Assembly: GCA_964199315.1 (NCBI GenBank)
Contig: OZ116699.1
Span: forward strand, 15,438,001-15,502,000
Direction of reading: 5' to 3'
Origin: Orbicella franksi
Lineage: Eukaryota
Length of the DNA: 64,000 bases
The translations under genes were made by a program, and so were the position numbers. The notes below the pieces were generated by a model, which was not told the origin of the DNA, did no database searches, and worked only from the letters and a program-made list of their open reading frames with translations. Positions 42,401 to 64,000 of this stretch are shown piece after piece. Positions within the stretch are counted from its first letter, which is position 1. Each line of letters starts with the position of its first letter.

Positions 42401-45400
42401 CAAACAAAACCGATTGCTACACTGAGCTAGTATAGTAATCAACAAAATGAACTTCAGCCAGTCACTTGTATTTCAAGATTTATATAATTTAAACAAAACA
42501 TGATTCCAGATACTCTTTCGTGAAATAACTATTGAAAACGTTCACTCTCTACATTATTTAGATACCCCCACTGTCCTAGGGCCACACACTTGCATCACCA
42601 GCTGTCGTGTTTTGTTAAAACAATGAAAATTATTTGATTTTCTTTCAAAAATTGGATAATGAAACTATTTTTATAATTCACTGTAGTGCCAAGGTTATAA
42701 CTAAAATTTTAAACAAATGTCGCATGGCGGTTAGGCTTGGCGAATGGCTTGACGTACTCCGACGGTTTTGAAGGCCACTGCATTCATAACGCTGTCAGAA
42801 AACCCTTCTGCTCTTGACAAAGCGTGATTCGAGCAAGTTTTTATCGTCTAAACGGCGATATGACAACCGCGAATGACTAAATTCAAGTTGTTCTTACTTG
42901 AAGTACTTTTGAATCCAACGATGGCCTGTGTGACCGCTGTATTCCGAATCCAGCGTTTTTTTTTTCTGCCCCGAGAAAAGCACATAAGAGACCACAAAAC
43001 TAGGTTTTCTGCTCTTAAGTTTTTAATTTCTCAACTCTTCATCCAAACAACTTTCTCATTCTATTTTCAATTTGACATCAGAAGAATCAGTTAATGAACA
43101 CTTTGCTTTCATAATTTTGAATGGCCTGTCAGTAAATAGCTAAAACACAAAGAAATTACTGAGGAAAACGGATTTCGGGATTTTTGGGTTAATTTTTTTC
43201 ATTGTCCATTAAGCTTTGATAAACGGACGTAGCCTGGCTCAAAGGAAGCGAATTAGACAACCATTGAAATATAGAGACGACGATAAAGATAAAAATTGCC
43301 TTAAGACCTTCCGTAAATCTGAGCTGAGTTCCGGGGTCACACCTTAACATCTCATTGAGCCTCGATAAATAGACGGCATAAGCTTGTGGAGGCTAGTCTT
43401 TCATCAACCTAATACTACTTAAAAATCGAAAAGTCCATTTGGCAACTGATAAGAGATACGGAAAAAATAGAACGCAAATGATTTCAGGATACATATCTCC
43501 ATTTTTATCATTTAATCATTCAGAGTTATCGGGATCACTCGGTTTGAAGCTAGAATATGCTGTTCGTTTCAGAATTCTACTATGGTAAAAAGAAATTAGT
43601 TATTACTTACCGGGTAAGACCATTTAAATGAAATCTTTGAGAAGCTTTTTCATGTGGAGCTGTTTTTTTTTTTTGTCTAATATCTTGAAAAATAAACTTC
43701 CATGTAATTTGAACTTGGGTAATGTTGGTCATCCTCGCTATTTCAAGCCAGCAGTTAATAATTCCTTGATACTTTTTAACTTCCCTCAACTAATTCAAGT
43801 AAGCACACCATGAGAATTTAGCCGAGACTGAAGAAGATTGAAAAGGACTACTAACGGAGACCTTGACACATTTAAGCTGCATTTTTCTAAGCCTGTCGTT
43901 TCTGCGCTGGAAACTTTGTCATGAAACGTTTTTTTTTAGAAAGCGACAACAAACAACAACAACATCAATCGGATTTTGGTTGTTGGTGTCCATAGATTCT
44001 GATTTTGTTGGTGTTACAGTATTAGGTAAGGAACTGAAAGACTACACTCGTATTTATTTTTCAATTATAGAATTGAAGCTTCTAACAGAACACGATCAAA
44101 CTTTACTTGCTGTTTATGTACTTTCTACAAATTAGCTGGAAAGAATCAGCGGCTTTTTAATCACGCAAACAAGCAAATCCTCTCCGCAGACCTCGGGGAC
44201 ACGACTAAGACCTAGCAATTTGAATTTGTCTCACGAGGGTTAAAAGGAGTAATTGAGTTTTTGCTACAAGAGGGAAGGAGTTTTTGCAAAAATCTGTGAG
44301 TGATAATAAAACATAACTTACTTGTTTAAGAAAGCCTTTGAATGAAGCCGCCACAGAGATCGACCCCATCAGAGTGTCGTGATGCTTCTTATCCTCTTCT
44401 GCTGTTTTTTTCTTTCTGGTCTATAGGAAACAAAATGAGAATCATATAAGTTATCTTATCCCACAACCGATGCCTCTTTACTGCTCTTCAGCAAATTCTA
44501 CCTGTTAAACCTCCCTTCAGCAGAACCTTTCTGTCAACAAAACACCTGCCTCGTTTTGCACTTACCTGGCGAATTTACTCTGACGTTAAGATTCAGCAAA
44601 TGATTCATGACTTTAAAAACTAGCTGCGCTCTAAGATAATATTATTAAACGCTATGGTCTCGAATGTTCTGAATATTACGATATTAGAAAGATGAGTTGT
44701 TGGCTAGGTGATTGATAGGGTTACTTTTGAAACTCTTTGGCATCTCAACAAGAACGAGGGCCATATTTACATTTAGCAAAATATTGCTTAAATGCCCGTG
44801 CATTTTCAAGCGTGATTATTGTGTTGAGCGGCCAATGCTGTGCTATTAAAAAACAGGCTTAAAGATTTTTAACTGCGTTTACAATTGTGTTCTCAATTAG
44901 CATAATAGACTCTTATGATTTTATTCGTCTATTTCTATCTTAGATTTAGTTTTGATTGAGAAGATATATCAAACATTCAAAAAGGTGTTTCATCGGGCCT
45001 GTTTCATCACATTTTCAACACTTCTTTTCCAAATATTTCCAAGCACCTCGAAGTTTGTCAAAACTACCCCTCCCTCTGAGCATGGGATTTCAACTGTCTT
45101 ATTGGTGTTAAGAATTGTGATGAAACACAGTCTCTCCAGTCTAATATTCCGTCGGCAAGTGGTCAAACTGCGATATTTTAGACATTTTAGAGTGCTAAAA
45201 TATCTATATACATATTTTTGGACTATCTAATCGACAAAATCAGCGGTTTTTGAAAAACAAAAGGATGCTGCTATCGTTGCAACCTCCGATGCTTAGAAAT
45301 CCATGAAAACAATAGAAAACTATGCGGTCATAAGTCATTTTCGGCGACTTTGAACATGGAGCTTAAGCGATTTGCCGCCACGAAATCGCTGCTGTTTTGA

Positions 45401-48400
45401 GCATGCTTGAATTTGGGTGCGATTTGCAGACGATTTCTAGTTGGAGAGCAACGAAAAAACCTACCTTGGCGTCAGCTCCTAAGAGTGGTTTGTCGCAACA
45501 TGGCGCACGGGACTAATACCTGACTTCAAAGAAGACTTTGGCATAGCGTTCGTCTGGGATCTCCCTCGAGATATTTAAGCAGTTGATCACGTGTTATATC
45601 TGCTTCCCTCCCCGTGGAATTGAAATTCACGCCTTAATCCTTAATTTTTTTTTTTTTTTTTGGCGGCAACAAAGAAAACAAATACCGATACAAAACGCAT
45701 TGCACCTTTTTTCTTCGTCTTTCCCACGATACATTTTTGTTTGCCACAAAGTAGCAAAGCTAGACATATGGAACTTACGTACACTTCACGCTAACCGCTG
45801 CGAAAGGCCCCAATTCATACTGAAAGTTGCCAGGAAATCGCTACTACTTTGCGCGTCTGGACTGATAGCTGTATGAATTGCCTGAAAAGCCGCCTGACAA
45901 AAACCCCGACGTAAACAGGTCCTCATGTTGTGGTAAGATATAAATAGGAGGTTGCAATCCAATTTGTTTTCATGATTCTTGCCCCATAGCAAACAAGAGT
46001 TTAATTCAAACTGACGTTTGTAAATAGTTTGGCGGTAATACACAGATTGGGTTTCTATAATAGCAGCTTCTCCGACGAATTTGATAGAAAAAAAACTTTA
46101 CGTCGACCCGTGAAGTTACATAGCTGCACGCTTTCGGTGACTTGAGTGACTGATTAATCTTTTGCTAAAGCAAACCGCAGCCAAACGAATTTCCCGTTCC
46201 CCCAGGCTTTTTTGTTAAAGGCTTGCCGTTACTGTAAATGTGCAATGTAAATTTAAAAAATGAACATAGATTAAAAGTCACACAGGAGTAACAAGGGAAA
46301 AAAATAAAGTGAGTTCTTAACATTCCTTCTAGTTAGCATCTTAAGTACATCATTATGATAGGATATCACTCATGCGACGCAAATAATTGTTTTGGAAGCA
46401 ATTAAAGTGTTGATACCACGGTAAATGATTATTTCATTTCTGCCCAATCGTCTCCAACAGAGTCATGTAAAAGCCTACTTGTATGGATATCTGCTTTCAT
46501 AAATAGCTCACAGTACATTTAAATTGTTACATAAAGGGAATAATACCCTTTTTAACACCTGTGGAGTATTTAATTCTCCCCTGAAACCAATCCTAATTTT
46601 TAGTGTCTATTAGAGCCAAAGAAACAAACAAAAGATTTAGAAAGCAATCTGAAAATGTATTTAGTACTCAATGATTTGAAAATCACTGCAGTTGTGTGAG
46701 TTGCCGTACTTTGCAAATTCCCTAAATTGACTGATTCGAAACAGTTCCGAGTTTTCAAAACATTTCAACTGAGCAAATCTCTGGAATGAGGTGCTGCTGA
46801 CATTGGCACTGGCCATTACGGCTGACTTCGAGGATTGAGAATGACAGGTAGAGAAATGCGTTTTAACTTACCAATTTCAGTCGGTCGCGCATCTTATTTT
46901 GGACAAGGCAACAATAATCTTTAGTCCTCTGCGACGTGACGATAGGTGCGACGAATTTTGATTGTGTCATCGCACGCGTGCAATACCGAAGTTACAGACT
47001 TGTATACTGGTCGCGTGATTGCGAGTTGATAAGCCGACGGCGGAGCAATGTGCCTGATTATCATATTAACTGTTAATTACCACTCGAGAAACACAAATAT
47101 TTACATTTTAGAGAAGTCAGCTATGAAAGAAAACCTATAATTCTTAATCACCGACCAGCAGAGAATGTCACGTCAAAGAGGCCTGTTTGCTTTCAATAGA
47201 CTGTGAAAAAGTTCACAGCTTTCCTTCAAATAGCTGCGTGTACAACATTGTTTCACCGTCAATTACGTAACATTAGGCTGTATGTTAACTCCTTACTTCT
47301 TAACAAAAGCGAACTCACGATGAGAAAACACGAAGCCGTTTTGCATTTGAAAGAATGTAGACCGCTTTCGATGAGTAAACACGGGCGACTCAAAATGCCT
47401 CGAGGGTAATAAAACCAAGGAAATTGAGTTTTAATCTCTTTTGAAAAAGAACCGACATCGGAAAAACAAAGGAGGGAAGTGACTTGAAGAAAGAATTTGG
47501 ACATATAGTTTAAAAATGTAATTGCTACGTGATTGAAACAACCCAAATTACACGCTCAAGTTGCTTTTACTGCGTAACTTCCAAACATGCCTAGAAATAA
47601 CATGTCCAAGATGTTAAGTTTCCCTTAATATCAAGTTCTACCCGAAAGCATTCAGCCAAATGAACTTTTTCTAGCCTTGAATTCCAATGAATTAATTGGT
47701 TTCGGGTCAGTTCTATTCAACTGGTTTCAGCAGTTTTTATAAAGGTCAACGTATTTTCAACTGATTGATTCCACGAGTGGTTTATCTGAACAACTAGGAA
47801 AATAAGTAATGCCTCTTATTAATTTACATGAAGATCAGTTGAATATTCTTGTTTTTGAGTACGGCTTAGGAACAATTCTGTGTTTGGAATTAAAGAATGT
47901 TAGGCATATAGTGTAAGGCCTTTCAGCCCCGAGCTAAAAACTTCAATTCTCTTAACCAAGCCCCATACATTTCTTTAATGTCATTTCTGAGAGTTTAGTG
48001 ATTCATCAAAGCAATACGTTTTTGGGTGAATTACCGGCTTATCGCACTTTTTGAAACGGCTTCGGAAACATACCAGGCTCGCTTCGTCTCGCCATGGCTA
48101 TGTTGGCTAGAAAGCGTCTCCAGAAAGTAAGAACCGTGACTTGACCAAAGGAAAATGATATGCCTTCGAAGCGTAATAAAGAGACACGCTAGCTGCATGG
48201 TTAGTATGACCGCATTACACGGGTTACTCACGTCATCCTTTTCTATGGCCTCGGAAGCCTGGTACTCCCATAGTAAAGCCTGGCATCTTTCTCGTGACGT
48301 CATATCACCTTCGTTCTGTAAGGATTCGCATGTCTTTGAAAAAGAAACAAAAATGTTGCGTTACAAAGGGCGGAGAAGAGCAATGTAAAAGTGCGACAGT

Positions 48401-51400
48401 GGGTAGTAACAACACTTGTTTTATTTTCAAAAATAAATTTGTTACTGGACTTGTTGGGCAGCAAAAAAATGTCAGAATATTACGAATTTCGTAATTTCTT
48501 GTTAAGCCAAGCACACGAGCAAGTTTGTAACTTCCTTGAAAAATTGTCCTCCTTTTTCACTATACGCCAGCTTTTGAATGAGAAGACTGAGAGCTTCAAG
48601 GACATTTGCCAAGGAGAAACCTGTCATATTTTTTGTTCCTCTTAGCAAAGAAACCTTGTCACATACCTTTGCTGTTCAAAGTGTTATACATGAAAAAACA
48701 ATTGAATATTATACACTTAATGACTGATCCAGAGGGAAATGGTCGATGTTTTCCGAGACGAAGTCGAGGGAAACATCGAGATTCAAGGTCGTGTGCTTAT
48801 ACCGATGTTTCCCTCGACTTTTCGTCTCCGCGGGAAACATACATCAACCAATGGAGGCGCGGGTTAGAGTTAACTTGTTTCCAGTGATACAGCAAGAGAA
48901 GTTGACTAGGGTTTAACTTACTTGTAGCACATCATATAAGCCTGGCCTGGCATCCTGGGCATCCTCTGTCATAGATACCAGCAGCTCTTGGAGTCTGCGA
49001 CTTAATGATGGTTTCTCTGCCTCTGTCAACCGCCAGTCAGCCGCTGACCACAGGGTGGCAGCCAGACTGAAAACACATGTCTGTGATAAAATGAAAAAGC
49101 AGTAAGTTATCAAGGCAACGGGAAAAGAAAACATAGGACAAACTCTGGTGACCAGGCTCCCAAAATTGTCAGCAGTGACTATAAGTACACGACCTGTACC
49201 TACGGGTTTGTACACAGTCATCTCTTGAAGATAAAATTACAACACTTGCGTGGTCATGCGAAAGAGGCTCCTTCCCATGATCCTCCGAGTGTTAAAATTT
49301 TTCTCTGAGAGGCAGAGTGAGCAATACCAGTCCCTCCTAAGTAGCATATATTTGTTTTGATACGTAAAATGCTTCGATTTTGAGCGCCAGGAAGTTTTGA
49401 GGCTGGTTGATCGAAACGCCGTGCTATCCAGGTACAAGATAATAGACAACAAATGCTAAACGTCATAAACGGTCAAGAGAGAAAATAAGGCCTTTAAGAG
49501 GGCCGATGATTAAATATTTCCTTTTATCCTCTCTTAACAAGACATATTGAGAAAAGCTACAAGTAAGTTATTTTCCAATGAACAGTAGACACCTTGTAAG
49601 ACGAGCAATTTGTAGCGACTCTTCTGCCACATTTTGCTATGTTTAACAAAGGCCTCACAAAGGTTTGTAGAACGAGGAAAATGGCGAAAAAACCGCCACC
49701 AATGCATTGCACACTGGCAGCCGCAGTGTAAGAGCGAAGGAGTTTGGGTCGCAGCTATTATCGTGGGGTTAGGTAAAATGACAGCCGGCCATGGTTCACA
49801 CTGTGCGTCAATATAAATTTGTTTTGACTTCTGTATTGAAAGCGTCCGTATGAATTATAGACTTGATATTTTAGTAATGTTACACTCCAGCGGACACCAG
49901 AAATTACAGGATGAAAATAACAGTATATTGTACAACCAAAATTAAGAACAAAAGGTAGCAGATTTTCACACGCAATTCGCCCACAAAGAGAGCAATATCT
50001 TTTAAGAGGTCAATAAGTTAAAGTCATTTCAATTTACGAATTTCTAGAGAAAAACCAATTAGCTGCAAATTCATTCATTAACCGTTGTGATACGAACAAA
50101 CAAAGCTGATGCTAAGAAAGGAACTTTCATGAATACCAAAAATGTCCGTGGAATTTACTGTGTCTAAGAGGTTTAGTGAATGAAGAGCAAAAGTTGGAAT
50201 TACGAGGCTCTTGTTACGTTGCTTATGACCCCATAACACTTAAAGGCGGCAATAAAACCACTTTTGTGTTGAGTACTTCTGATTAACACTTTTGGAATAC
50301 CTCAGGGAGTGTCTTGAGATTCCGTGATGAAGAAAGACGGCGGATGTGGTATAAGCCAAAACAAAAACAACTTGATAAGCGGAATAATTGCAGGAGGAAA
50401 AAAAACACTAACTTCGCTAACTCCGTCAAAAAAAAGAAAAGCAATAGTCGCTGTTTTGCTAACAAAGTGATCAAGGAAACGAGACAGTTAATGAAACAAC
50501 GCACTCAAGTAAATTGTATTGAAAGTTCTCGACACTAAATACCAAAAAGTCTATTTCTCTTAATATCGGTCATGAAAGTCACGCTTTCACTGATGTCAGT
50601 CTCAAAAATAATAGTTAGCGCAATTTACACCCAATCGAGAAAGAGAAAACAGAAGCTGTGTTATTTCCCTAAGGACATACAGGGTTATATTAGTATATTT
50701 TGAATAAGAGATAGTGCATAATTTGCGAATAAACAAGTAACTGATATCATGGCATACCAAACACACGACATAACCGAAAAGTAAACTGCCGGCTGTGAAG
50801 TGGCTGAAAACTTAAGATTTCTCGGCCACTTTCTAAGCCAACGTTATGTTAACAACATCAACAGGATGGCAAAACATGACATAACGTTTACAAACGAATC
50901 GCCGGTTGTTCTTTTAATAGGGCAAGAATGCACGTGTAAGAAAGTAAAGATTTCTGTTCACTTACCACACTAGCTTGTATTCCAAGGGTAAAGTTTCGTA
51001 GAAATGCGTCAAGAGATCTCAGAAGTTAGTAACATAACCTTAAAACTTCTAGAGCTCTTGAACGGACGCGCTGACTAGTCAAACAGACAAACAAATCAAG
51101 TGTAATAAATCATGTAAATTTGATGGTTTCGTTGTGCGAGTAAACATTCCCAAGGATATCCGAAGTACAGTGTAAGAAATCTGTTCCTGATTGAACGTAC
51201 TTTCAAACCTTTTCGTTCGCAGTTGAAACAGGTATGAAGAAACGGTTTTCCCGTATGTTCGGCTGCTTCTAACTCTTGAATGTAAAATATTTTGAACTCA
51301 CGCCCGCCGGACTTTTTTTATACTGGCAAATGCCTTCTATTGTTATGCCACACAGTGATGCCTTTTGATTACACAAAGAAAAGGAAACTAATGCGCGACC

Positions 51401-54400
51401 AGCTGGAACAAAAGAACGAGTACCTAAAGCAAAACAAAGATCTGTTTTCTTATGGTTACATTTCAAGACCACTCTACCTTTTAATGCCTGAAAATGTTAC
51501 CCAATCTTAAAAACCTGGCATCTAGTATGTAAACCTCCTTGTGAGTCCCCGTTAAATACTTAATAACACAAGTAAGAGAATTACAAGTTAAAGTCGGTGC
51601 TCAGTTGCCAAATTCTCATGACTTATAAGTATGATTTTATATTGATATCCTGAGCAGAAATCCGGTACTGATCAGGCTCAGGGCTAGCTTTTTTCACTTT
51701 ATCGCGATCGCAGTATACTAGAGCTGGTCTCTGAGCTTAACTTTAAAGAAACGTCTTACACTATTTTCTCATGCCTTGTTAAGATTTTAAATAGCGCATA
51801 GCTGAAACTTAATGCAATTGTGAGTTACAAATACAGAGAGAAACGCTTCATAGCTTCATTTTCAATGACTTTATATACCTGCGAATTTGCTTCCACAGCT
51901 AAAAGCACATCCATTCAAATTGTTGTCTGCTCTGTCTACTGCAACAAGCTTTTGCTCAAACCTCTACAACGCACAAAGCCATCAGTTTGTTTTATAGCTA
52001 TGTCATGTAACAACTGAGCACCCATAGGCGTTGACTCTACACGTTGTGCGTTACTCCGCCACAAGTACCTGGCACTAATGAGCCATGAGTAAACATTCTT
52101 GAGAATTTCTCTAAACATACAAAGGCTTCTTGCGTCGACGGGATTACTTAATGGAAATCAATCCCCTATACTGTTCGTAGTTATACAACCAAAACTTAAT
52201 GCGTTAGGTAAGGAGCCACTACTGAATGATATTTTCTCTGACCACACAAAGTTTCGTGCGCCGATGACGTCACGCACTTGCACTTAATCGCCTCAGCTGC
52301 ATGCAAGTTTCTGTATATACAGTGACGTCAGAACAGTAATTAAAAGCCATTATCAGACCGCGTAGTCAGTATTACGTTTATTGTACGAATAGATACAGCT
52401 TTAATTGTCATTAAGAGCCTTTTGTATTCAGCACAATAACAGCTGAGTTTACGTTTCTTGTGAACTGAGTTTGTAGGCGACGATAGGCGAGAAAATTGTT
52501 ATTTTCCAAAAAGGATAAAATATAATTGGCACGATGAAATGTTTCAGCTGAAAGAAAAACAGCGATTCATTAACCTATTTACCAGCGTAAATAAATACGT
52601 AATAATTTAGCAATTATAGAACGATTGTCGTAATGAATTTTAAACGTTGCGCCCCTGGACATCAAAGTTACTAGGCAAGACTACTGTCAGGTTATTGAAC
52701 AAAACACTGAGTATTTCACTTTCACTTCAACACTTGACAAAGTTGCCTGGGGTTTTATCTGTTTTTTAAAATCTACATACTGAGTTTTGTTTGACCCTGA
52801 AGCTGAAATACTCTAGCTTTGAAATTTCTGACACTTGGTTAAATTGTTCTGTTGGCTAAGAAAAGACGCCTCTCAGAGGATCTAACATCATCTGTAGCCG
52901 AGAGTTTGTGTGTAATTACATTTTGTAGGATTCGTAATTAAAACCCTTTCCGCATGACTCTGTTGGACACCTTCGTGTAGTTGTCGCTTTGTTTCACAGT
53001 TAGAAGAGAAACGTTCAGTGTGAAGTCTTATTCTGCTTGTTCATACACACCGCGTGGATGTGTGTGCTTTCTAGATTTGCATAATGTGCTATCCTACTTA
53101 AATATGCGTACACAAAATATAATATACAATAGGTGCTAATTCTCACGTGCCAATATGTTACACCGACATCCTTGGGGCCGGGAAAAAAGTGTGCACTTGG
53201 GAGACGCTATTTATGAAAGGTTAGGACGGGAAATCAAATTGACTAAGAGTGCGTTTAGCGACAGGAATCTCAGTGTTCGACTGTACCCTTCAATTGCGAC
53301 AAAGGACAGTCACTGAACAAGTGACAGATTTTGCCTTATTAAGCCAGCCACCACAATCAAACTTCATTACACGGCGACATGCCAGATCGCAGACAAACAG
53401 ACGAAGCTGAAAACCTTACAAACGTTACCCTTTCAACCGTAACAGCGAGCAATATTTAAATGCTCTAACTCCTCTTTAATATTTCTTTGCAAAGCTAAGG
53501 AAGACAGAAAAGGCCTCTCTGTATATCAAAGGTGGGTGAGAGAGCTTCCTGTAACAATATTATTATTATTTAAGACACCATATTCAGCATTCAATTACTT
53601 GTTTAGGAACGTTTGAAACAATTTCAATGAAATCTCCGCAAAAACCTGGCAACTAATAGACGATGGGGTAGTGTGTTACCCAGGTGGGATCAAACTTAAA
53701 GGAAAATTTCCACGAATTTTGAATTACGAACTACAAGAACTGATACGGTATAACATGCACGCCTGTTCCAGATTATGACGATGTCTTAATCGATCGACAC
53801 TGGTTCAATTTGCTAAAATACCGTCAGACACAAAAACCGCAAAGAGACACACTAAAGAAAAGAGTGATAAATGACTCATTAAGTGTACTTAATATGAGCA
53901 TAACTCGTGACTTATTCTAATCGGGCTTACAGACTATTTGTTGTTAGTTACAGGTTCAAAACGTAAGCTTGCCAAAGGCTATTTTTCTGCAATAACTGTG
54001 AACATTCTCAATTACTTAGAGATTAGACGGTTTATCATCAATAAGTAGTACAGTCATTACAACTGACAATACAACCCTTGTTCGCGGTTCTTAAGCCCTA
54101 TGGGCCGGGTAGCTCTTTTAAATTTGTTATTTTGTGAAAAAATGTCACACGAATATGAAGAGCCTATCGCAGAACGCGACCGGATCAGTGTTCAGTTTTA
54201 TTTAATAAACGACGCACAAAATTGTGAAGAGAATTATCACAAAACGTTTGGAAACAACACAATGTACATTGACTAAGGAAATAAGTCATTGTTTTGCCAC
54301 TGTAGTCATTTATCAAAAGTAGGCATAAGTTTGTGTAGGGAATCGAAGTTATAAGTTGTTCAAACGTTAAGAAATATAACAAGGTCTTTAAGATGTCTGG

Positions 54401-57400
54401 AAACGCATGCAGTAACTTGACAAACTGCGCTTGAACGTTGTTAGAGAAAATGGATTAGTGAAGTCCAATTACCTCTTAGCGGTCTAGACATGTGGTTTAT
54501 CAAAGCACGAAAGTTTCAGTGACTGACCTCCGCTTCGTTAATCATAAACCTCGCAAGACTGATTCATACTTTTCGCACGACACAAGTTTTGAAAACTGAA
54601 TGCCACAGCTCTTTTGAGAGTATTCCGTGTGGAGCTGGGTGGAAAAACAGTGGGACTACAAGTTTGCAAAATACATGAGGTCTAAGAGTCGATGCAACAA
54701 ATCCCATCTGCGCATTAGATAACTACATAGTACTGAGCACAATATCTTAGCAAGATGGAGATCTTTTCCACAAAAACCGCAGTTAAGTACACTGAGAAAA
54801 ACTTCTTTTTCACTAACTAAAGCGAGAGCGAAAATTATAAAACAACATCGAATGATGAGTTCAACTAGCAGCTTAACTGAAGCCAAGGAGAGCACTTCAT
54901 ACATAATACAACGACCGCGATTGAACGATGTGTGCTTTAAGCTTTACTTGCTGCAGCTTTCGACCCGATTCACTCAACTCAGAGGAAACGTATAGGGAAC
55001 ACAACATTACAGTTCTCCTTAAAATGAAAATGATTCGCTAGCAGTCCGTGAAAAAGACAAAGCACATACCTTGGTCCACGAGTTAATCACATGCGTTGTT
55101 TTCCTTTTTGCTGACGATCACAACGACAGTCGGATGAAAATCACGCTAAATTGACTTTGCGTTGATGCAAAGAAATGTCATTGTCCATATCACACATGAT
55201 CTAACAACATAATCATCTACCAAATGGTGTTAGCCGTGTCGGACTTGATACGAATTATTCTTCAATCCCAGACGCCTGGGTTTCTCACTGGCTATTTTGC
55301 ATGTGTTTCGAAGTTCCTGTGGCATTGGACAATATGATGGTTTCCACTGATGTGTCACAACAAACTCATAGGTGACCTCAACGAAATGATATGTCTTTCA
55401 GTCGCATTTGCCTCGAAGGCAATGTTAAACGTTTCAAATTTTTCAATATATAGTTTGTTAATGCATGATGAGTCGATAAATTTTGAAGCTTTCACTGCTA
55501 CATCTTACACCATTTTTGTTGTCATGGAAGTTCTCTCGGTACACACAGTAAGGAGAAATTCTTATAACTCTACTTCCAAAATACAGAGAGCTCTTTATTA
55601 TGCGGATATCGACACAATTGGGTCCATGTGACGCTTAAGTCAATACTGACAAACTACTATCTATCCACAACACAAACAGTTTGTCTTCAAGGACAGTTCC
55701 TGACTTTATACACAACTATTCCTCATATACAGCAATCTCCAGTTGGGTCTCTCTCTAAAGGGTTTTGTTCGACTGTATTTACACAAAAACAGTTGAGAAG
55801 CCGAGAGTATCAGACCATGTAGCTATTACTGTCAAAGAGCATGTCTCAACAATTACTAAATTTTCTCACCTTCTCGGATGCAAACTTGTTAGAGTATTCT
55901 GGAGCCAGGAATAGGTCATCAATAGAAACTCCTGCAAGACAAGTGTCAACATACAACAATTAACGGATTGATAAGCTCATGTCAGTTAACACGTCTCTGA
56001 TGTCACAACCTTAAACAAGATTAAGAGTTTCAAAAACTTCTTTACATAGTCTAGTAAGTGATATCATAAAGCCTCTCACCAGACACGAAAACGCCGCAAC
56101 CGTTGAAATAAAATTGTTGAATAGCCGATGGTTTTGATGTGAAATGGATATTAAATAAATATCACGTCTAGAGCTGCTTTCTATGAAAAACTGAAGACAT
56201 TTTGAGCTTCACAAATTGCGGGCACCTCTCGGACGGAACCTGCGCAGATTGTCTACGAAACGAGATTTGAGAAAGCACGATACACTAGGATTTGAAGAAT
56301 ACAAAAGCATTAGTTACAATCAAAAGACAGCCTCTAGATACAAAATCTCGCCATTAATAACGTAACTACGTAACTAGAGATTTTCTTGGCAGTGCTTGGG
56401 TGTAGTTCATTAGAATGAAGTCAGCTGAGAAGCCAGTCGTAAGAGAATCGTGAAGAAATCTTTGTCTGTGTTTGCAGCGAGCACAAGGATTGTACCTAAT
56501 TACCAGCTCGTTAATGGAAGGACCGTCTTTATACATTCCTAATGTGCCCTCTTTGTGCACAGGGAAAGTTATTTTTAGCACACAATTCTTCAGCTAATCC
56601 CTCTTGCTATACAAAAGACAGCCTTGATTTCAGGCACGTTTAAAATAACCTAACTTATTTGAAGAGCTGCTAGCAATTTTGCAGAATGCTTACTCTGGAA
56701 AATGTTCTTACCATGGTAAAATGGCGTCGGAGGTCACAATTACCTTAAATGAACAGGCTAAAGGTGTACATACTGTACATAAATAAAACATAAACATACT
56801 GACAACCTAATTAATATACAAAACAAGGGAAACCTCTTTCAAACGTTTATATCAACGGATGGCCAAACACGCCACTAAAAGCAGTATCAATGAACAATGG
56901 GTTAATCAAAACAAGAGTGTGTTGACTGCCTGTTAAACGTTAAGGTCAATACACTCACTTCAAATCCAACAAACGTTCAACAGATCTAAGCTGATACACA
57001 GTTACTTCTGAAGCATGTGCTCTTCTCACACTCAACCCCTTTGAAAAGTAGCTCCACTTTCAAACAACGTGAAAAATACTTCTTGATTTTGCACCATCGA
57101 AATGAGCACGAACTATCAAACAACGCTTGAAAAGAGTCTTCGCCATTGTTTAGTACAACTTGAAAGTGACTGAGCAAAACAACTCAGGGGAAAACAGTAA
57201 AACCAATTTAGCTCAAACCAGAATGGACCTATTGTTGTGTAAATCTAAGATTCTATTTCAAACGCGATTATAATGATTCGAACGCTAACGCGAGTAATGA
57301 GCTTAAGGTCATTCCCCAGTATTGCAATGCGCATCCCTACTGCGCATAATTTAACGCGTGCATAGCGCGCGCGCATTAAAAAATGGCGGCTTTTTCTTTA

Positions 57401-60400
57401 CAGCTGGACCTCGCCATAGAGGTAAATCGTCATTTTCTCGCAAACGAGTATGGTGACCTAGCATTTTTTTCTGTTGTTTTGAATTGAGTATTAAATTTCT
57501 CTGTGTAAAATAAATATGGACCAATTCTCAGTGTAGAACAAAAAACAATCGTCGGAAACGTGAATTTGGCAAGCAATCGTGACTACAGTCATGGTGCTAT
57601 TCTAAGGATTTATTGGGTATAAACAAGGTGCATAGTGATTGATGCGACTTCAGCGAAAACAAGTGCTCATTGTTGATTCACGTAAAAGAATCTTAACTAA
57701 TGATTCTTGCTGTTTATATTGGTCCTTGAACTAATTTCAGTTTTGATTTATGTTTTTATTATCTTTGTCCCAATGCGAGGAGGTTAGTTCTCGAACTGGA
57801 AGAGAGCCTTCTTCTTCTACACCGTCTCAACGAGTTTCGTAAAAAGGAGAGGTTGCATGGCAAGATCTTAGGCGAGGTTGCACAGCGTATCAATCATGTC
57901 TGGTTGCTCATCTTTTATAGCTGTTCCATGACGGTAAGGAAAGCAAGTAACAGTCAAAAGAGCGTTAAACCCGACAAGTTGACAGAAGTCAAGCTCTCTT
58001 TCGTCCAGCTACATAATATTCCATCTGAACATCTTAAGATTCCGATTTAAACCCGGTAAACAAACAGGGAACTTAACGCTTTCCAAAGGTCGCAAACTTA
58101 GTGCGTACAAACCTGTGCTGAGGTGCTTGAACTTGATGGTACCACTTGGGTTGATGATTACGGTTTCCAGGGACACGTAAGAAGCTGAAAAAAGAGACAT
58201 TAATAACCTGAACTGCTTGGGTTGACCGTCGCTTTAGTAACGCGGGAGTCATGAGAACCCTTTGAAGCTCACAAATTTTTTTCCGAAGCCTCTTCATAAT
58301 TTCTCAAATAATCATTTCTATCTTTCCTTCACGTCAACTATCCATCACTCTCTGTCAGCAATTCATAAATATTACATGCACTCAAGCCATTCACCAAATA
58401 AACATTATTCTATTCTCAGCCAAAAGAAACGAAGCCATCATTAATTGATTCGGCACCGATTACAGAACCATTACAGTACCATGTACATGTGGCTTCCAAC
58501 TCTGATTGGCACGATAGGCTTCTTGTTATTAACCGGTTGTCTTATAAACCGACCCCCACCCTCCCCCTCCCCCCTCCCCTCTTCCCCTGGGAAGACCGCT
58601 TTATCTTTTAATTGTTATCTACACTTACGCAAACTTCCCAGCGCATCCAGGGTCCGCAACGTCTTGGAACACTCTTTGCAAATGGCGACCAACTCTACTT
58701 CAGTCAAACAGGAAGAGAGGCCGTTCAACAGCTCTCGGATATTCACAGCCTTCACAAAACACGTCAAAAATCAACTTTATTCCGGCAATCAGGATTAACA
58801 TTCTCTTTATATAATTTCTGTAATTTTCGGAGATTTTCTGATCATGCAAGTCCTTCATAGCTCCTGGTCTGCCTACTTGAATTTGTTATAGGAGGTAAAA
58901 AGAAAGTCGACTTTAAATCCCCGAATCGTAACATAACACGAGTAAAATTAAATATTTGCTTTCAGTTAGAATGTTTATGTCTTTCCCCGGCTTATCATTG
59001 GTATTCAGCCTTACGATACAAAATTGGGAGGGAATTGGGGAAAGGTATCAGTTCTTATAAGTCTAATTGGGCAATAACGAAAATACATACTGAACGGTTT
59101 ATAAATACCTTTCTTAATAGACTTAGTTTTAGATATAAATTAGCAACGTAGATTTTTCAATTTCTTGTCTTCTTTAATGCAATTTTAATTTTAGCATTTT
59201 CAGTCAATTTTTTTTATCGTAAGGGCCTATTAAATATTCTAGCTAATTCTACTTTGTAAATTTTGATATGTATTTTTATCCAATGAATAAAGACATTATT
59301 ACATTATTATTACCACTACGATCAATAATTTTAACGTACCTCCTGTCGTACCGGTGCACGAAGGACAGAACTTTCGACAACCGTTCTTATCCTCTCAAAC
59401 TGTGCTGCAGACGCTGGTATACTGTTGCTACCACTAACGCTCTCTGTATAAATCTTCGATCTTCTTTTCGTCACACGAGGGACAATGCTTTGCTTTCTTC
59501 TGGGACCCATTTTTCTGTTCATCAGCTTTGCGAGAACATTTGTTCTCGACTGTTGGGATGGAGAGTCGGGTCTTAAGTCAAGAGCTGTTTTACCGGCATT
59601 AGCCATAGAAGAAATGTCCCCCACTCCATCATTCTCTACTTGTATTTTGGCAATACTGGGTGTAATATTGTTATTCGCGTCTACGTTAGGACTATTCTCG
59701 ATGCTTTTCGTCCTGCTTGTTGTTTCCATGACGCCCATCAATTCTTTCCCACTCACGTGGCTGTACTCACTACTTGTGACTGTACGTGGTTCCAAATTAA
59801 TACCGTTTACTTCGCTGTCTGTTCCTTGCTTACCTCCATCTTTGGCAGTCAATGTACCTTCGATTGAAGCAACACGTTTATCAGATACTCGATGAACTGC
59901 AAATTGTTGAAGTGGAATACTTTCGACAGTTGTCCAGCATTTCGATTGGGTTAATTTATCGTCAGTGTTTGGGTTTTGTTCACTCTTTTCGGAAGGTTTG
60001 GAAGAAGGATCTTGTGTTTTCTGCTTACTGTCACTTCCCTCGAGTTTCGCCTTCAAAGAAGCATACCTCTCGCTGAGTGCCGCAAACCTTTCCTCCGTGG
60101 GAAGGGAATCGTTTAGAGGCGGCTGTTTCGGAGATATTCCAAGTTTACGCACGATCCCTTTTCCACCTCCACCATGAACAGTGACTCTCGAACTCATTGT
60201 AATGGTCGAATTAGTCGTGGCTGACTTACTTGCCTCTGTTTTTTTGATCCTGGAATAATCATCAGCCTCCTCCTGGCTTAATGGAAGGAAACGCGAATTA
60301 TCGAACCCCACACCACTTGAGTGTTGGTAATTCGGTTGATTTACCCTCCCTTCTGTTCTTCCAGATGTATCGTTTGGAATCACAAAGGTGATAGGAGGAC

Positions 60401-62480
60401 GTTTAATCACGTTGACACTGCTCTTCCTTTGAGGAGGCGCAACGCTTCTCGCAGGAAGTGGAGCGCTGATTTTTCTCTGCGGAGACTGCACTCGAGGAAC
60501 ATCCATACTCTCGCTTGCAACCAGTTGCCTGGGCACGGGAAAATTAACGTCACCATCGGCTCTAATGTGAGACTTTTCCTTGGACTTGCTAAGTTCAGAT
60601 GGACTTGAGTCTTTGGCTGTACCTTGCACTTGATGATTGAGAACCATACCAGGGCCATTTGAGTTGCGCATATCGTCCGATGGGCCACATCTCTTTGCAC
60701 TATCTTTTGATTCGGTGTTAATGTTGTTACCGTTGACGCTATTGCTGTTGCTGTTGTCGTTGCCCTTGTTGTGTTTGTTTGACAAGGAATCCTTGATAGA
60801 TGCTGCTGTGTTCAAGACGGATGATTTACGATCGTTTTCGGGGTTACTTTCATTTCCCCACTCTCCAGTGTCTAACGATTCTCTCAAGGAAAATTCCAAA
60901 GTTCCTGTGGGCGGCTTGGTAGAAGCAATGGAATTCCTCCGCTTCCGCTGCATAGCCTGGCTGTGGGTGATCACGTGTTGCTGAACGATAGCCAGCAGAC
61001 CTTTGGGACGAGCTTCACTGGGTGACCCCTGAACATCTTTGGAATTTGGCACCTCTGGTCCAATGGGTGACCTCTTCTCTGATTGAGCGTCATCAGTTTC
61101 GCATTTAATGGTCAAAGCAGATAGCGACGGGCATCTTTTAGCTGAGTTTGGAGACAGCGTGTTGAGGACATTTCCAATGGAACCCCTTCTAGTTAGAGCC
61201 GGGCTTTTTAATATCCTCCCAAGAATGCCATCTTTGTCCTTGCTTGGGCAGTTGCATTTGCGCTCCTTTTCAGCTGCAGGTTTTAAAGACGTTTTGATGC
61301 CAACAACTTTGGATGTTGAGCTGCCAATTTGAGGAGAAAGCGTACGCAAAACGTTTCCAAGAGAACCCCTACGTTTTAGTAAATTGGGAAAATTCATTAT
61401 TTTACCAAGAGCATTTTCGCTTTCCTTCTTAACCTGACTCTCAATTTTAACCTGTCTTTGGATACTTGGACTTTCATCACGTTCAATTTTACCTTTGTTG
61501 AAGTTCAAAGGAGAAAGTGGTCTCCATGGATCTTTTACGTGACCATTTGCGTGTGGCAATAGAAGTGCTGAACTGAGTTTTCCATCGTTGCCAGGTGTTT
61601 CTTCTCGACCATGATCGGATTTCTTGTCGAATTGAGGCGACAGTGATAGCAGAACATCACTCAAAGACCCTCTCCTGGTTAGGCGAGGAGATACAAGAAC
61701 CTTTCCAAGCATGCCTTCGTCGTTATCGGTATTCTTTGCGGAGGAACGGCGCGACCCTGGTTCTGACCCTACCTTGCAATCGCCATCTTCGGGTGATCCA
61801 TTCAGATTTATTGATACACTTGCAATGCTGCTTGATCGACGAGATTCTACTACGGGATTCAGGGAGGTTATTCGTTCTAACACTTCTGGGTCAATCACAC
61901 TCCCTCGTCGAGATCGATGAGGGGCCATGGATGTGTCAACTTTCCTGAGCATCTCATACAGAGCTAACTCTTCGTCCCTTGTTTCTTTGGAGCTCTCCTG
62001 AGGGAAGGACGACCCAGTGGTCGCCGGAGAAACATCACCAGTATTGCAAGCATCGTCACCTGCATCATCTGTGTACGACAGAACGTATGTGGATACAGCC
62101 TCTATTAAATGCTCATTGTCCTCTGTGGAATTCTCGAAAGAGAAGCATCGCTTATAAAGTGGAGATTCGTCTACATTGCAATCACCGGAAGAAAAGGCTA
62201 TCGTGCCATTTGCTGCGCTAGTGGATTCGACATTCTTAGTGCCTTCGTAGTACTCTTGCGTGGGTTCACAAGGCGGTTCGCTCGCAGCCCTCGACCTTAA
62301 TTCTCCCTGTTTAAAGCTACCAGTTGAGCGTCGTCGCTCTTTATCCGTGTCTTCCTCTTCGGGTTTTTCCGGAATATCGTGAAGAGTGTGAAAGAAACGT
62401 ACATCGGCAATGCTATGTCTCCTTCGTCTTGGCCGGGACTGTAGACTGGCGTTGTTTAGAAGGAACTTTTTCAGATCCAT
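25070..62480 (-). CDS. KNDC1: very-KIND / kinase non-catalytic C-lobe domain-containing RasGEF, about 3,800 aa
   Basis: Exons (high to low): 59340-62480, 58629-58749, 58113-58184, 55870-55931, 48922-49080, 48232-48333, 44322-44420 (probable), 36292-41391, 35348-35471, 33425-33566, 32623-32902, [unresolved junction], 32122-32195, 31865-31924, 31109-31199, 30856-30947, 30607-30665, 30321-30494, 30112-30222, 29576-29729, 28823-28964, 28677-28720, 28447-28605, 27660-27953, 27084-27206, 26668-26727, 26369-26526, 25070-25307 (TAG). KNDC1-specific segments: [25 protein letters not shown]...[58 protein letters not shown]...[15 protein letters not shown]. Confidence 0.88.
25342..25658. mobile_element. 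Long-TIR MITE, 317 bp, 9-bp TSD (MULE-like)
   Basis: About 90-bp TIRs starting tagcctgcgaacgcagacgtatt and ending aatacgtctgcattcgcaggcta. agtaatcag is duplicated at 25333-25341 and 25659-25667. Confidence 0.9.
27297..27620. repeat. Probable interspersed repeat in a KNDC1 intron
   Basis: Internal direct repeat gagcgggcaagatga and internal inverted agatggctgga/tccagccatct. Resembles a recalled common anthozoan repeat; only one copy in the window. Confidence 0.55.
31328..31592. mobile_element. MITE, 265 bp, TAG..CTA termini
   Basis: Ends tagagcggttttcatttgagtatcg and cggcactcaattgaagactgtgcta are imperfect inverted repeats. Same family as 8807-8891. Confidence 0.75.
35576..35713. repeat. Palindromic MITE fragment
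   Basis: attccatgttgccttgcgtctgtccagta pairs with tactgaacagacgcaaggcaacatggaat. Confidence 0.8.
36292..41391 (-). CDS. KNDC1: 5,100-nt internal exon of KNDC1 encoding 1,700 aa of Ser/Pro/Arg-rich, probably disordered sequence
   Basis: Open frame throughout (ORF track 36199-41259). Acceptor tttttccag at 41392, donor GAG|gtaagt at 36291, phase 0-0. The next exon continues into the conserved FAFDGY segment. Confidence 0.88.
48232..58749 (-). CDS. KNDC1: KIND domain exons of KNDC1 (5 exons)
   Basis: The spliced peptide [56 protein letters not shown]...[60 protein letters not shown] matches the KIND consensus. Phases 0-1-1-0-0-0 are consistent. Confidence 0.9.
48747..48839. repeat. Short palindromic element
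   Basis: gagacgaagtcgagggaaacatcg pairs with cgatgtttccctcgacttttcgtctc. Confidence 0.8.
55093..55630 (+). pseudogene. Possible decayed rhodopsin-class GPCR, antisense within a KNDC1 intron
   Basis: Frame-shifted segments [14 protein letters not shown] (TM1-like; GN position mutated) and [15 protein letters not shown] (TM2 LAxxD motif, 55230-55247), followed by hydrophobic stretches with stops. Confidence 0.3.
57307..57400 (+). mobile_element. Left end of a Kolobok-like element related to 13634-14276
   Basis: ttaa|ggtcattccccagtattgcaatgcgcatccctactgcgcataattt aligns with the first ~46 bp of the 13634 copy. The right end was not identified. Confidence 0.6.
58553..58587 (-). other. G-rich tract with G-quadruplex potential
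   Basis: The minus strand reads GGGG-AAGA-GGGG-A-GGGGGG-A-GGGGG-A-GGG-T-GGGGG. Confidence 0.6.
59340..62480 (-). CDS. KNDC1: First coding exon of KNDC1: 1,047-aa low-complexity N-terminal extension
   Basis: ATG at 62480 with an in-frame upstream stop and an acceptor at 62540 (5'UTR intron). Donor GAG|gtacgt at 59339, phase 0, matching the phase-0 start of the first KIND exon. The splice link is inferred. Confidence 0.75.
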
Positions 62481-64000
62481 GTCTATGCCACAGTGGTTTA
62501 CGATGCAATTAGAGATCTAGAACACTGTGCAAAGATAATCTGCAAAATGGACGGATAAAATTGATTCACAAACTTTGTCACCGTGGGTGTACCATGAATT
62601 TTTCAAACTCTCTCTGAGAAAGTGAAATAATGCTATTACTTGCTGGGAAGTTTAGCTTAAAAAGCTTATTAGCCTTTGTAAATATGTTTTCACGCAACAG
62701 ACTATAAATTTGTTATACATAGTTCTACATTCAGTTTAGTTTCAAACTTTGATGTAACATGTGAAATAATACATCGATATAAGACAAAAAAGCTTGAAAT
62801 GTAGATCACTTCTCATGAAACGCGCTATCAATGTATAATAGAATATACCTAATAGCGACGTGATTAACTCTTAAAACAGAAGTCAATTAAAGCGTACAGT
62901 AAGATTTGGCTCAAGCCCCGGAATTGACGTGAGAGGTTTCATACATCGTAATAAATGAGTTTGCTTATCATATTTGTTTGACAATTCATTCAGTGATCGA
63001 CATAATTTCGTTTTCTTCGCTTGACCTTCACTATTCAGAAGCAGAGTCATCTATTACGATTCCGGAACTTTGACTGTATTTTCACTGACACGGCACGGAG
63101 CACTTCACGTGCGGTACGGAACGAAGAGTCAGTTTACTCACGTGCTCAAAGCAACATATTTGACTTCTTCACGCCAAGTCTTCAACAGTCATTTCCACCG
63201 TGAACCATCATTAACGATATTATTTTGGCACTCAAGGGTATAGTTCAATGCCTTCAGATGGCCAGCACAGTTAACGTTTTCAGGCATCTGTAGCAAACAT
63301 TGCTTTGTTCTAGCTAAAGAGGGATATTAGGTACATCTTAAAATGTAATCTACTGTAATCCTATAATCATTGTCCGTAATATCCAAATGGAGACAAAACA
63401 TGGATTTAGAGTGATTTACTTCTGAATCTCATTATTTAAAGAGTTATGTCATCGCAAACACAATCACTTGTAAATAAATTGTTGTACTGAAAGTTTTGGT
63501 TCATGAATTAATATTAATGAACTGTAAGCAAAATGGTAATGCAAATGGAGCGACGACAGCGGAATATAATTATGCGAGTACTTTTACAATAAAAAATTCC
63601 AAAGATGTTGGAGGTAAGTTACAAAATGTGACACATTTTCAAAACTGTTATTCCACTGGTAGGTATTTATTTTCACTGATCACGAACAAAGCCAGTTCGT
63701 TTCTATTCATGCGTCGTTAGCATTCCTTTATAATGATTTTTTGTATTATCGGTACCTTGGGGAATTTAGCTGTATAAAGGATTTAACTTATGTTTAGAAC
63801 AGCCAAACGAAAAAAGCCTCTTCATTAAACTGTTCTCTCCGAAGTTTGAAAATCTTGGCCAATTCCCACATTTTACATAAACAACCTCATCCTTTGCGAG
63901 ACTCTTCCTTGATGAAATGAAAGCTTGTCGCAATTAAAAGAGCATTATAAGTAATAATTTCTTTGTGCCGCGTAAATAATACACTGTGTATGGTCATGTA

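Follow-up and report, generated by a model that had tools for sequence, protein, structure and literature searches.

CREB pKID is disordered and, upon binding, adopts the order helix, pSer133, helix (PMC4030872). After phosphorylation by PKA, tau engages 14-3-3 dimers by means of pS214 and pS324; the peptide around pS324 reads ..SKCG-pS-LGNIHHK, and its Gly(-1) and Gly(+2) are tolerated by the 14-3-3 groove (PMC12313985). In mouse, MAP2 tethers v-KIND to the microtubules of dendrites (PMC2064798; Huang et al., 2007). In the structure of the Spir-1 KIND domain (2YLE), a helical formin peptide occupies the place of the missing G-helix (PMC3415841).

Here we describe a unit of ~30 residues that occurs three times in the window, a 64,000-nucleotide stretch of the Orbicella franksi genome. 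All three lie in the N-terminal extension, ~1050 residues long and predicted to be disordered, of a very-KIND/KNDC1-like Ras guanine-nucleotide exchange factor from coral. We compare them with the systems above and weigh what they may do.

Three diverged copies of one unit

An initial sequence-only reading had located three copies, separated by linkers of 30–70 residues. The peptides translate exactly from those positions on the minus strand (Table 1), within an ORF of 1049 residues (59331–62480), and the linkers measure 71 and 32 residues. The consensus of the unit is h-L-G-[KR]-I-h-x-S-P-x-L-[TK]-R-R-G-S-[LI]-[GS]-[DN]-V-L-x-x-L-S-P, with one additional residue ahead of KRR in R2. The net charge per unit ranges from +3 to +5.

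Smith–Waterman scores between unit pairs were 70–92, whereas a unit scored against 300 shuffled versions of the whole ORF gave 29 ± 4 (maximum 49). Scanning the coral's own genome returned the units with E-values of 8.7e-17 (R1), 1.3e-19 (R2) and 1.2e-17 (R3); R1 reached 73 bits against the seed HMM. Each pair has 16–17 identical residues, 9–13 of which differ in codon, and nucleotide identity between units is only 53–57%. Because the codons have diverged while the residues are identical, the repeat is old and maintained at the protein level. The codon comparison and the column conservation given below both agree with the original proposal that the protein pattern is kept by selection.

The conserved site upstream of the units (residues 189–209) carries a basophilic motif in 21 of 30 sequences and is missed by the unit HMM. 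Judged by its sequence only, it may be related to the units.

Table 1. Features of the locus, in window coordinates; residue numbers refer to the ORF that holds the units.
Feature	Position	Strand	Details
Whole gene	25073..62480	(-)	~24 coding exons, ~3770 aa; collinear tblastn of Oculina P0095
Exon 1, first coding exon	59340..62480	(-)	1047 codons, from M1 to ...VLRAPVRQE; disordered, Ser-rich
Exon 2, KIND start	58629..58749	(-)	RNA contig joints on both sides
Exon 3, KIND continuation	58110..58184	(-)	5' end by RNA; 3' end approximate
Upstream related site (putative)	61854..61916	(-)	aa 189-209; RRGS and a hydrophobic stretch closing in L-x-P
Unit R1	61629..61715	(-)	aa 256-284; putative phospho-acceptor Ser272, codon 61665-61667
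Unit R2	61326..61415	(-)	aa 356-385; putative phospho-acceptor Ser373, codon 61362-61364
Unit R3	61143..61229	(-)	aa 418-446; putative phospho-acceptor Ser434, codon 61179-61181

The units are predicted to be disordered motifs

The sequence-only reading had recognised no named domain in the units, and neither Pfam nor the PDB provided one. The whole ORF matched no Pfam-A family at E ≤ 1, and 87 units scanned singly against Pfam-A at E ≤ 10 gave only two unrelated one-off matches. A profile of the 87 units returned two chance matches among PDB sequences, both with E > 1. Unit R3 alone found no PDB sequence at E ≤ 10, and an ESM Atlas feature search with residues 240–460 yielded no usable match.

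AlphaFold2 predicted disorder overall (mean pLDDT 48.8; pTM 0.13), with helices of only 4–7 residues. These short helices coincide with both hydrophobic segments of the unit, where pLDDT is locally raised. In R1 (residues 259–262 and 273–279) and R3 (419–424 and 435–441) they flank RRGS on either side, and in R2 (357–362) there is one only ahead of it. The helices and the column counts agree with the earlier description of an RRGS site bracketed by two short segments and SP. On this model, the units are short motifs, disordered and centred on a PKA-type site, rather than folded domains. Of the 'undescribed module' first suggested, the word undescribed holds; the predicted disorder argues against a folded module, and the occurrence in a single gene lineage against a family spread across many proteins.

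Several known motifs were compared with the units and rejected. A PKI-like helix with pseudosubstrate was represented by PKI(5-24), the classic kinase docking peptide of this type, with its sequence verified in the PDB; it scored -1.8 bits against the unit profile, a value reached by 19% of anchored shuffles, and was dismissed as a relative in sequence. WH2 actin-binding repeats were considered because Spire pairs KIND with WH2, and found no Pfam support (ORF at E ≤ 1, units at E ≤ 10). PP1 RVxF, B56 LxxIxE, SxIP, D-box and paxillin LD motifs were compared by eye with the column counts and none fits.

The units belong to a KIND–RasGEF gene

Exon 1 starts with a Met that is conserved among orthologues and terminates at the donor GAG/GTACGT. 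An RNA contig joint with GT..AG ends (58749/59340) connects it to the KIND exon, which makes exon 1 part of the KIND–RasGEF gene. Exon 1 was seen in RNA-library contigs of two studies, one contig splicing it to the following exons; in the raw poly-A RNA runs X23 and X24, hardly any reads fell on the stretch. Exon 2 shares 83% identity with the beginning of KIND in Oculina P0095, and exon 3 was placed by the joint 58184/58629 together with tblastn using P0095. The gene order is N-terminal extension, one KIND, a giant disordered exon (~36289–41403), RasGEF_N (~29573–30502) and RasGEF (~25073–28985). All exons probably form one transcript in this genome, as gene models of Oculina and Nematostella suggest, with exons 1–3 linked by RNA contig.

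Pfam scores for ORF fragments of the window were 25.9 bits for RasGEF and 22.5 bits for RasGEF_N; the corresponding region of Oculina P0095 (2150-2817) scored 85.3 and 55.0 bits. KIND reached 17.8 bits with the exon fragment in the window and 32.2 bits, at a cut-off of 26.7, with P0095:80-280. Atlas features gave 0.97 to chordate KIND clusters. As exon 1 is spliced to KIND, with RasGEF_N and RasGEF downstream, the product is a very-KIND/KNDC1-like Ras exchange factor.

In the Oculina and Desmophyllum gene models that were retrieved, the first exon is cut or split, and the repeats have consequently been filed as separate 'hypothetical proteins'. The Desmophyllum orthologue P0114 is annotated 'cerebellar granular layer formation'.

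Conservation and copy number

Absence from orthologues, which had been named at the outset as an observation that would speak against the module, was checked, and the units are present: all 29 stony-coral orthologues keep three or four of them. A more distant relative has two or three, and Nematostella has one, at residues 417–446 of P0116. Across the 29 orthologues and the window, mean column conservation is 0.76–0.82 in the units, R3 being the best-conserved copy (0.82), compared with 0.58–0.60 in the linkers.

Among the 87 copies, the near-invariant upstream columns are I (84), the P of S-P (79) and L(-5) (82). They are followed by the site itself, with R/K(-3) in 83, R(-2) in 85, G(-1) in 79 and S(0) in 84 copies. 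After the Ser come L/I(+1) in 83, D/N/E(+3) in 87, V/I/L(+4) in 86 and L(+5) in 81 copies, and the terminal L-S-P at +8 to +10 is kept in 78, 75 and 75.

There are no paralogous units elsewhere in the 497-Mb genome, where the best non-self match had an E-value of 0.28. Among 1.84 billion representative proteins, the unit was found in the hexacorallian orthologues of this gene only; this search is blind to a single diverged copy such as that of Nematostella (26.6 bits), and the restriction to Hexacorallia is bounded accordingly. The ancestor probably had a single motif, as Nematostella has, with internal duplication multiplying the copies in stony corals. The locus would then offer a clean case of a short linear motif multiplied internally, from one copy in Nematostella through two or three in an intermediate lineage to three or four in stony corals.

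Basophilic sites and a proposed phospho-switch

Exon 1 contains 16 [RK][RK]x[ST] and 9 RRxS sites, compared with 4.5 ± 2.1 and 0.8 ± 0.9 in shuffled sequences; none of 2000 shuffles attained either count. Of the 16 sites, eleven are conserved in 70% or more of 30 sequences, and the extension holds ~8 further conserved [RK][RK]x[ST] sites besides the units. All three units of the window match the PKA consensus R-R-x-S/T-hydrophobic, and for this reason PKA is the best-fitting kinase. Leu(-5) and the hydrophobic residue at +4 would also suit PKG, CaMK, PKD and AMPK-family kinases, and sequence alone does not separate PKA from other basophilic kinases.

We propose, with a probability of roughly 0.45, that the unit is a lineage-specific, internally duplicated and disordered kinase-inducible linear motif, whose phospho-dependent binding to a reader controls the exchange factor. 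The unit would begin with an amphipathic helix (h-L-G-[KR]-I-h), followed by a Ser-Pro break, the extended basic segment L-x-R-R-G-S and another amphipathic helix of the type Φ-x-x-Φ-L-x-x-L, here [LI]-x-[DN]-V-L-x-x-L, with S-P as its cap. A basophilic kinase would phosphorylate the invariant Ser and thereby place the phosphate at the N-terminus of helix 2, like Ser133 in CREB pKID. The phosphate may switch the binding state of the unit, most likely by letting a phospho-reader dock, for instance a 14-3-3 dimer, and three or four copies could provide multivalent, switch-like control of the location or activity of the exchange factor.

Phosphorylation of the units, the kinase responsible, a reader and any influence on exchange activity are putative elements of this proposal. 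The gene context, which points to a signalling exchange factor, is counted in favour of a kinase-inducible motif. Because conservation over 30 residues exceeds what a 14-3-3 or kinase site needs, another or additional partner is likely. If the proposal is right, a very-KIND-type Ras exchange factor is regulated in hexacorals by densely arrayed sites for basophilic kinases, and three or four of them have been elaborated into inducible binding motifs of 30 residues. Kinase signalling by cAMP or Ca2+ would then be coupled directly to Ras in cnidarians.

Alternative functions of the units

The same pattern of column conservation is compatible with other causes, such as a high-affinity docking or substrate site for a kinase, with no reader downstream, an amphipathic segment that binds membranes, or a signal for localisation. 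The last of these would combine the basic cluster with the export-like pattern L-x-x-V-L-x-x-L, and the hydrophobic spacing of helix 2 resembles that of leucine-rich export signals. We regard this group of explanations as unlikely, given that the invariant Ser and R-R(-3/-2) point to a phospho-acceptor and that the likeness to PKI(5-24) ends at RR. Rather more doubtful is a role of the units as ligands of the KIND domain of their own or a second molecule, on which their amphipathic helix and basic stretch would dock at the site that the formin FSI peptide takes on Spire KIND, until RRGS phosphorylation releases the units, resulting in phospho-gated autoinhibition or oligomerisation. Units and KIND share a polypeptide, the units look like kinase substrates flanked by helices, and KIND, itself a kinase C-lobe homologue, binds a helical formin peptide in Spir-1 (PMC3415841). 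However, the units resemble no PDB chain in sequence, FSI peptides included, and three or four copies per single KIND have no obvious stoichiometry. A complex prediction of the Oculina KIND (P0095:88-262) with R3, run without supplied alignments, gave 0.02 against a mark of 0.34 and speaks neither for nor against such a contact. We consider it very unlikely that KID-style inducible helices dock in the G-helix-like groove of their own KIND and are released when a cAMP-dependent kinase phosphorylates RRGS. If true, the protein would contain a phospho-gated multivalent autoinhibitory switch coupling cAMP signalling to hexacoral Ras activation, and the first KIND domain still reading substrate-type peptides.

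A further possibility, to which we give hardly any weight, is that the units are tau/MAP2-like repeats that bind microtubules or tubulin and are released by phosphorylation of [KR]-x-G-S. The coral protein would then have in cis what mammalian v-KIND gains through MAP2, the protein that ties mouse v-KIND to dendritic microtubules (PMC2064798). The positive charge of the units, their length of ~30 residues and the hexapeptide G-S-L-G-N-[IV], common to tau repeat R3, fit this idea. Against it, only these six residues are alike, the units end in L-S-P, and they are not contiguous, with linkers of 32 and 71 residues between them. Neither the exon nor any of the 87 units matches a Pfam tubulin-binding repeat, even at E ≤ 10, and searching the PDB with the unit profile brought up no tau or MAP chain at E ≤ 10.

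Comparison with known systems

Like very-KIND/KNDC1, the coral protein combines KIND, RasGEF_N and RasGEF in one chain, the middle part of which is long and disordered. In mouse v-KIND, a pair of KIND domains forms the extreme N-terminus, whereas the coral protein has one detectable KIND after the ~1050-residue extension; only one KIND stretch was found in Oculina P0095 and in the window. The formin FSI peptide, which is recognised by KIND, resembles the units in being short, basic and helical and in coming from a region of disorder, and a PDB sequence/profile search found no sequence similarity between the two.

The pS324 site of tau resembles the units in the hexapeptide and in a basic residue at -3. 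This likeness is at the level of pattern only, the tau peptide scoring 3.3 bits with six matching residues. Unlike tau, the units have no PGGG and no contiguous period of 31–32 residues, and Pfam tubulin-binding repeats do not match them. The classical 14-3-3 mode-I motif (R-S-x-pS-x-P) has Pro at +2, and the ELM 14-3-3 pattern disfavours Gly at -1. The units have the Arg(-3) and Ser of mode I, a conserved Gly(-1), and G or S, never P, at +2.

Like pKID, the units are predicted to be disordered and to have a helix A, then a PKA-type site of the form R-R-x-S, and a helix B that places hydrophobic residues at +1, +4, +5 and +8, with L-S following. When pKID (PDB 1KDX chain B) is aligned to the unit profile, the register is L-x-R-R-x-S-h-x-x-h-L-x-x-L-S; the score of 4.4 bits, attained by 1.4% of anchored shuffles, marks a likeness at pattern level only. 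The Pfam pKID family of CREB, CREM and ATF1 (PF02173) matched neither the ORF (E ≤ 1) nor the 87 units (E ≤ 10). Phospho-dependent binding to the KIX domain of CBP/p300 is a property of pKID. Unlike pKID, the coral units insert four or five residues, S-P-x-L, between helix 1 and RR. Whereas pKID is part of a bZIP factor, the coral units occur in three copies in an exchange factor of the cytoplasmic type.

The repeat and its gene

The three peptides quoted in the sequence-only reading (R1, R2 and R3) are reproduced exactly by translation of their intervals, and are separated by linkers of 71 aa (R1–R2) and 32 aa (R2–R3). Local alignment scores between units were 70–92 for all pairs, against a background of 29 ± 4 for one unit (maximum 49) in 300 whole-ORF shuffles. 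As had been proposed, the protein pattern is kept while codons have diverged: each pair of units uses different codons at 9–13 of 16–17 identical residues, and nucleotide identity between units is only 53–57%. Together, the high scores and diverged codons establish that the repeat is real and old, and that it is the protein sequence which has been maintained.

Coordinates of the repeat units and associated coding features
Feature	Position	Strand	Description
ORF holding the units	59331-62480	minus	1049 aa
Exon 1 (first coding exon)	59340-62480	minus	1047 codons
R1	61629-61715	minus	residues 256-284 of the 1049-aa ORF
R2	61326-61415	minus	residues 356-385 of the 1049-aa ORF
R3	61143-61229	minus	residues 418-446 of the 1049-aa ORF
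Second giant coding exon, same gene	36202-41259	minus	1686-aa ORF, Ser/Pro-rich
Downstream ORF series	about 17380-22350	minus	separate gene

The exon 1 ORF closes with ...VRQE, followed by GTACGT. One RNA contig (run X2) carries the joints 59340/58749 and 58629/58184, and the parts it skips are bounded by GT..AG on the minus strand. Exon 1, including all three units, is covered by RNA-library contigs from two studies, whose coverage falls to zero at 62531–62924, just upstream. Such contigs also cover 63079–63522, upstream of the start codon and with no joint reported; this stretch may represent a 5′ UTR exon or belong to a different transcript. Another observation concerns one X2 contig (depth 5.7, five other differences) that lacks 6 bases at 61220–61225, in frame. 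As placed, which may be ambiguous, the gap turns G-I-L-G-R into G-R-R at the start of R3, and the contig may represent an allele or a sister taxon.

The second giant exon, used as a query, retrieved the RefSeq model P0095 of Oculina (2817 aa; precomputed Pfam KIND, RasGEF_N and RasGEF) as well as models from Desmophyllum (P0114) and Montipora (P0113). P0095 begins within the tail of the exon 1 homologue, continues as ...VRQE-ALTIQQLLNGL.. across the same junction as in the window, and aligns collinearly with the window, as about 24 pieces between 59612 and 25073. Pfam scores on P0095 were 32.2 bits for KIND (cut-off 26.7), 85.3 for RasGEF and 55.0 for RasGEF_N, and the KIND region groups with chordate KIND clusters at 0.97 (ESM-Atlas features). 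From the exon joints, the collinearity and these matches, the gene is a very-KIND/KNDC1-like RasGEF (PMC2064798). The second giant exon makes up most of the stretch between KIND and RasGEF_N, gave no Pfam hit, and is 48–98% identical to most retrieved orthologous exons (40–84% without the nearest, 98% match).

Public models cut exon 1. The Desmophyllum locus is divided over P0014, a 'hypothetical protein' that has the repeats, and the KIND-containing P0114, which starts inside exon 1; in Oculina, P0012 spans the first 867 residues and P0095 begins at an internal Met close to the end of the exon. The window's unbroken ORF, taken with the RNA joint, points to one gene, to which exon 1 belongs.

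Downstream of the RasGEF gene lies a separate gene, a series of ORFs that look coding and contain much coiled-coil-type sequence (e.g. LQNIWSEIGLEEEQKEERTKSVLFHL), which we take to be reminiscent of PRC1/Ase1-type proteins.

Conservation and history

A word-seeded search for homologues of the exon returned 29 proteins of similar length, all ORF-level copies of exon 1, two of which bear stony-coral names (Oculina patagonica and Desmophyllum pertusum). The repeat is kept in these orthologues, with R1, R2 and R3 all in register, and mean column conservation is 0.76–0.82 in the units versus 0.58–0.60 in the linkers. Counting from the Ser of RRGS as position 0, an 87-unit alignment retains the helix-1 Ile (84/87), the Pro of S-P (79/87), Leu −5 (82/87), Arg/Lys −3 (83/87), Arg −2 (85/87), Gly −1 (79/87), the Ser itself (84/87), Leu/Ile +1 (83/87), Asp/Asn/Glu +3 (87/87), Val/Ile/Leu +4 (86/87), Leu +5 (81/87) and L-S-P at +8 to +10 (78, 75 and 75 of 87).

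Several taxa have four units, the additional one lying between R2 and R3. The extra unit of its carriers (P0019, P0022–P0026 and P0028) is an R2-type duplicate that shows partial decay in P0022, P0023 and P0028, whereas P0024 and P0025 have their decayed copy at the R2 position. The near-identity of units one and two in P0027 and P0029 suggests a separate event of duplication or homogenisation.

A profile scan of the 497-Mb assembly matched R1, R2 and R3 at E 1e-17 to 1e-19 and found no further units there, the next match having E 0.28. Among 1.84 billion representative proteins, seven clusters fell below 1e-30, all within the 29 exon homologues; P0030 followed at E 1.9e-9, P0031 and the 137-aa fragment P0038 had one unit-like stretch each, and the remaining matches were low-complexity noise. 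P0030, an exon ORF of 1217 aa from a metagenome scaffold, has the landmark islands of the coral exon, two good units and a decayed one, and closes with a donor of the same kind (..SE, then GTACGG). The N-terminal extension of the Nematostella vectensis RefSeq model P0116 (3966 aa) is homologous and carries just one unit, FKTICTSPGILKRRMSLGDVLNSLAP (residues 417–446, 26.6 bits). The simplest reading is a single ancestral motif that internal duplication later multiplied. Since a single diverged copy scores too low for the 1.84-billion-protein search, absence outside Hexacorallia is not demonstrated.

Nature of the unit and its kinase sites

The unit had not been recognised as a named domain, and this held: a Pfam scan of the ORF and units gave no family, and a search of PDB sequences no relative. 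An AlphaFold2 model of residues 241–462 (28 aligned sequences) contained as its sole structure five short helices (R1, 259–262 and 273–279; R2, 357–362; R3, 419–424 and 435–441), with local pLDDT of 50–62 within units against about 40 in linkers. Of the phospho-regulated module suggested by the sequence-only reading, RRGS between short predicted helices and the SP sites stand; the model shows no folded domain (mean pLDDT 48.8, pTM 0.13). As modelled, the unit is a linear motif or a pre-structured element for binding, set in a disordered region, with the order helix 1, S-P, L-x-R-R-G-S, helix 2 ([LI]-x-[DN]-V-L-x-x-L), S-P. Further strongly conserved islands of the extension (aa 126–138, 494–529, 685–700, 791–813 and 983–1007) match no known family; conservation reaches 0.92 among them, in sequence that Nematostella also has.

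The unit core is a textbook R-R-x-S-hydrophobic site; Leu −5 and the hydrophobic +4 also suit other basophilic kinases, so the sequence cannot name the kinase. Exon 1 holds 16 [RK][RK]x[ST] motifs (4.5 ± 2.1 in shuffles) and nine RRxS (0.8 ± 0.9), counts that 0/2000 shuffles attain, and eleven basophilic sites are retained in at least 70% of 30 sequences. Given this enrichment, the extension looks like a multi-site kinase input region, three of whose sites have conserved flanks.

A possible phospho-switch

Likenesses to the CREB kinase-inducible domain (pKID) and to tau around pS324 lead us to propose that the unit may be a kinase-inducible docking motif, in which a phosphate at the N-terminus of helix 2 would switch binding and three to four copies would provide multivalency. 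We give this idea as a whole slightly less than an even chance (about 0.45). The partner would most plausibly be a 14-3-3 dimer, a suggestion we hold more tentatively: Pro is absent at +2, Gly −1 is conserved, and thirty conserved residues exceed such a site's needs.

Binding of the units to their own protein's KIND domain is an attractive but unsupported idea; the precedent is the Spire KIND, where a helical formin peptide is bound in the position of the G-helix (PMC3415841). Tau-like microtubule repeats are suggested by a hexapeptide common to units and tau and by the connection of mouse v-KIND with MAP2 (PMC2064798); against them, no profile matched, PGGG is missing and the units are not contiguous. 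The units might also act without a phospho-reader, as kinase docking sites, localisation signals or membrane-binding segments; for docking, the peptide PKI(5-24) showed no similarity to the unit profile beyond RR.

The repeat is genuine and unannotated, and is apparently described by no family. Its value lies in a testable link from a basophilic kinase to a cnidarian RasGEF, in a neat example of motif amplification, and in the evidence placing exon 1 in the KIND-RasGEF gene.

Comparison with known systems

Elements of this kind are familiar: linear motifs that are conserved around a phospho-site, lie in a disordered regulatory region and have been duplicated within a single gene lineage. In how Ser and helix 2 are placed, the unit follows the pattern of pKID, which is disordered and folds on its partner to helix, pSer133, helix (PMC4030872). 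The pKID sequence (checked as PDB 1KDX_B) aligned to the unit profile in the register L-x-R-R-x-S-h-x-x-h-L-x-x-L-S at 4.4 bits, a score matched or beaten by 1.4% of shuffles that kept RRPS in place. Tau R3 has a site identical to the core G-S-L-G-N-[IV], where pS324 of the peptide ..SKCG-pS-LGNIHHK sits in the 14-3-3 groove after PKA phosphorylation (PMC12313985). Both likenesses are of pattern and do not count as evidence of common descent. Compared with very-KIND/KNDC1 (PMC2064798), the coral gene has one detectable KIND domain and adds an N-terminal extension of ~1050 aa (1300 aa in Nematostella).
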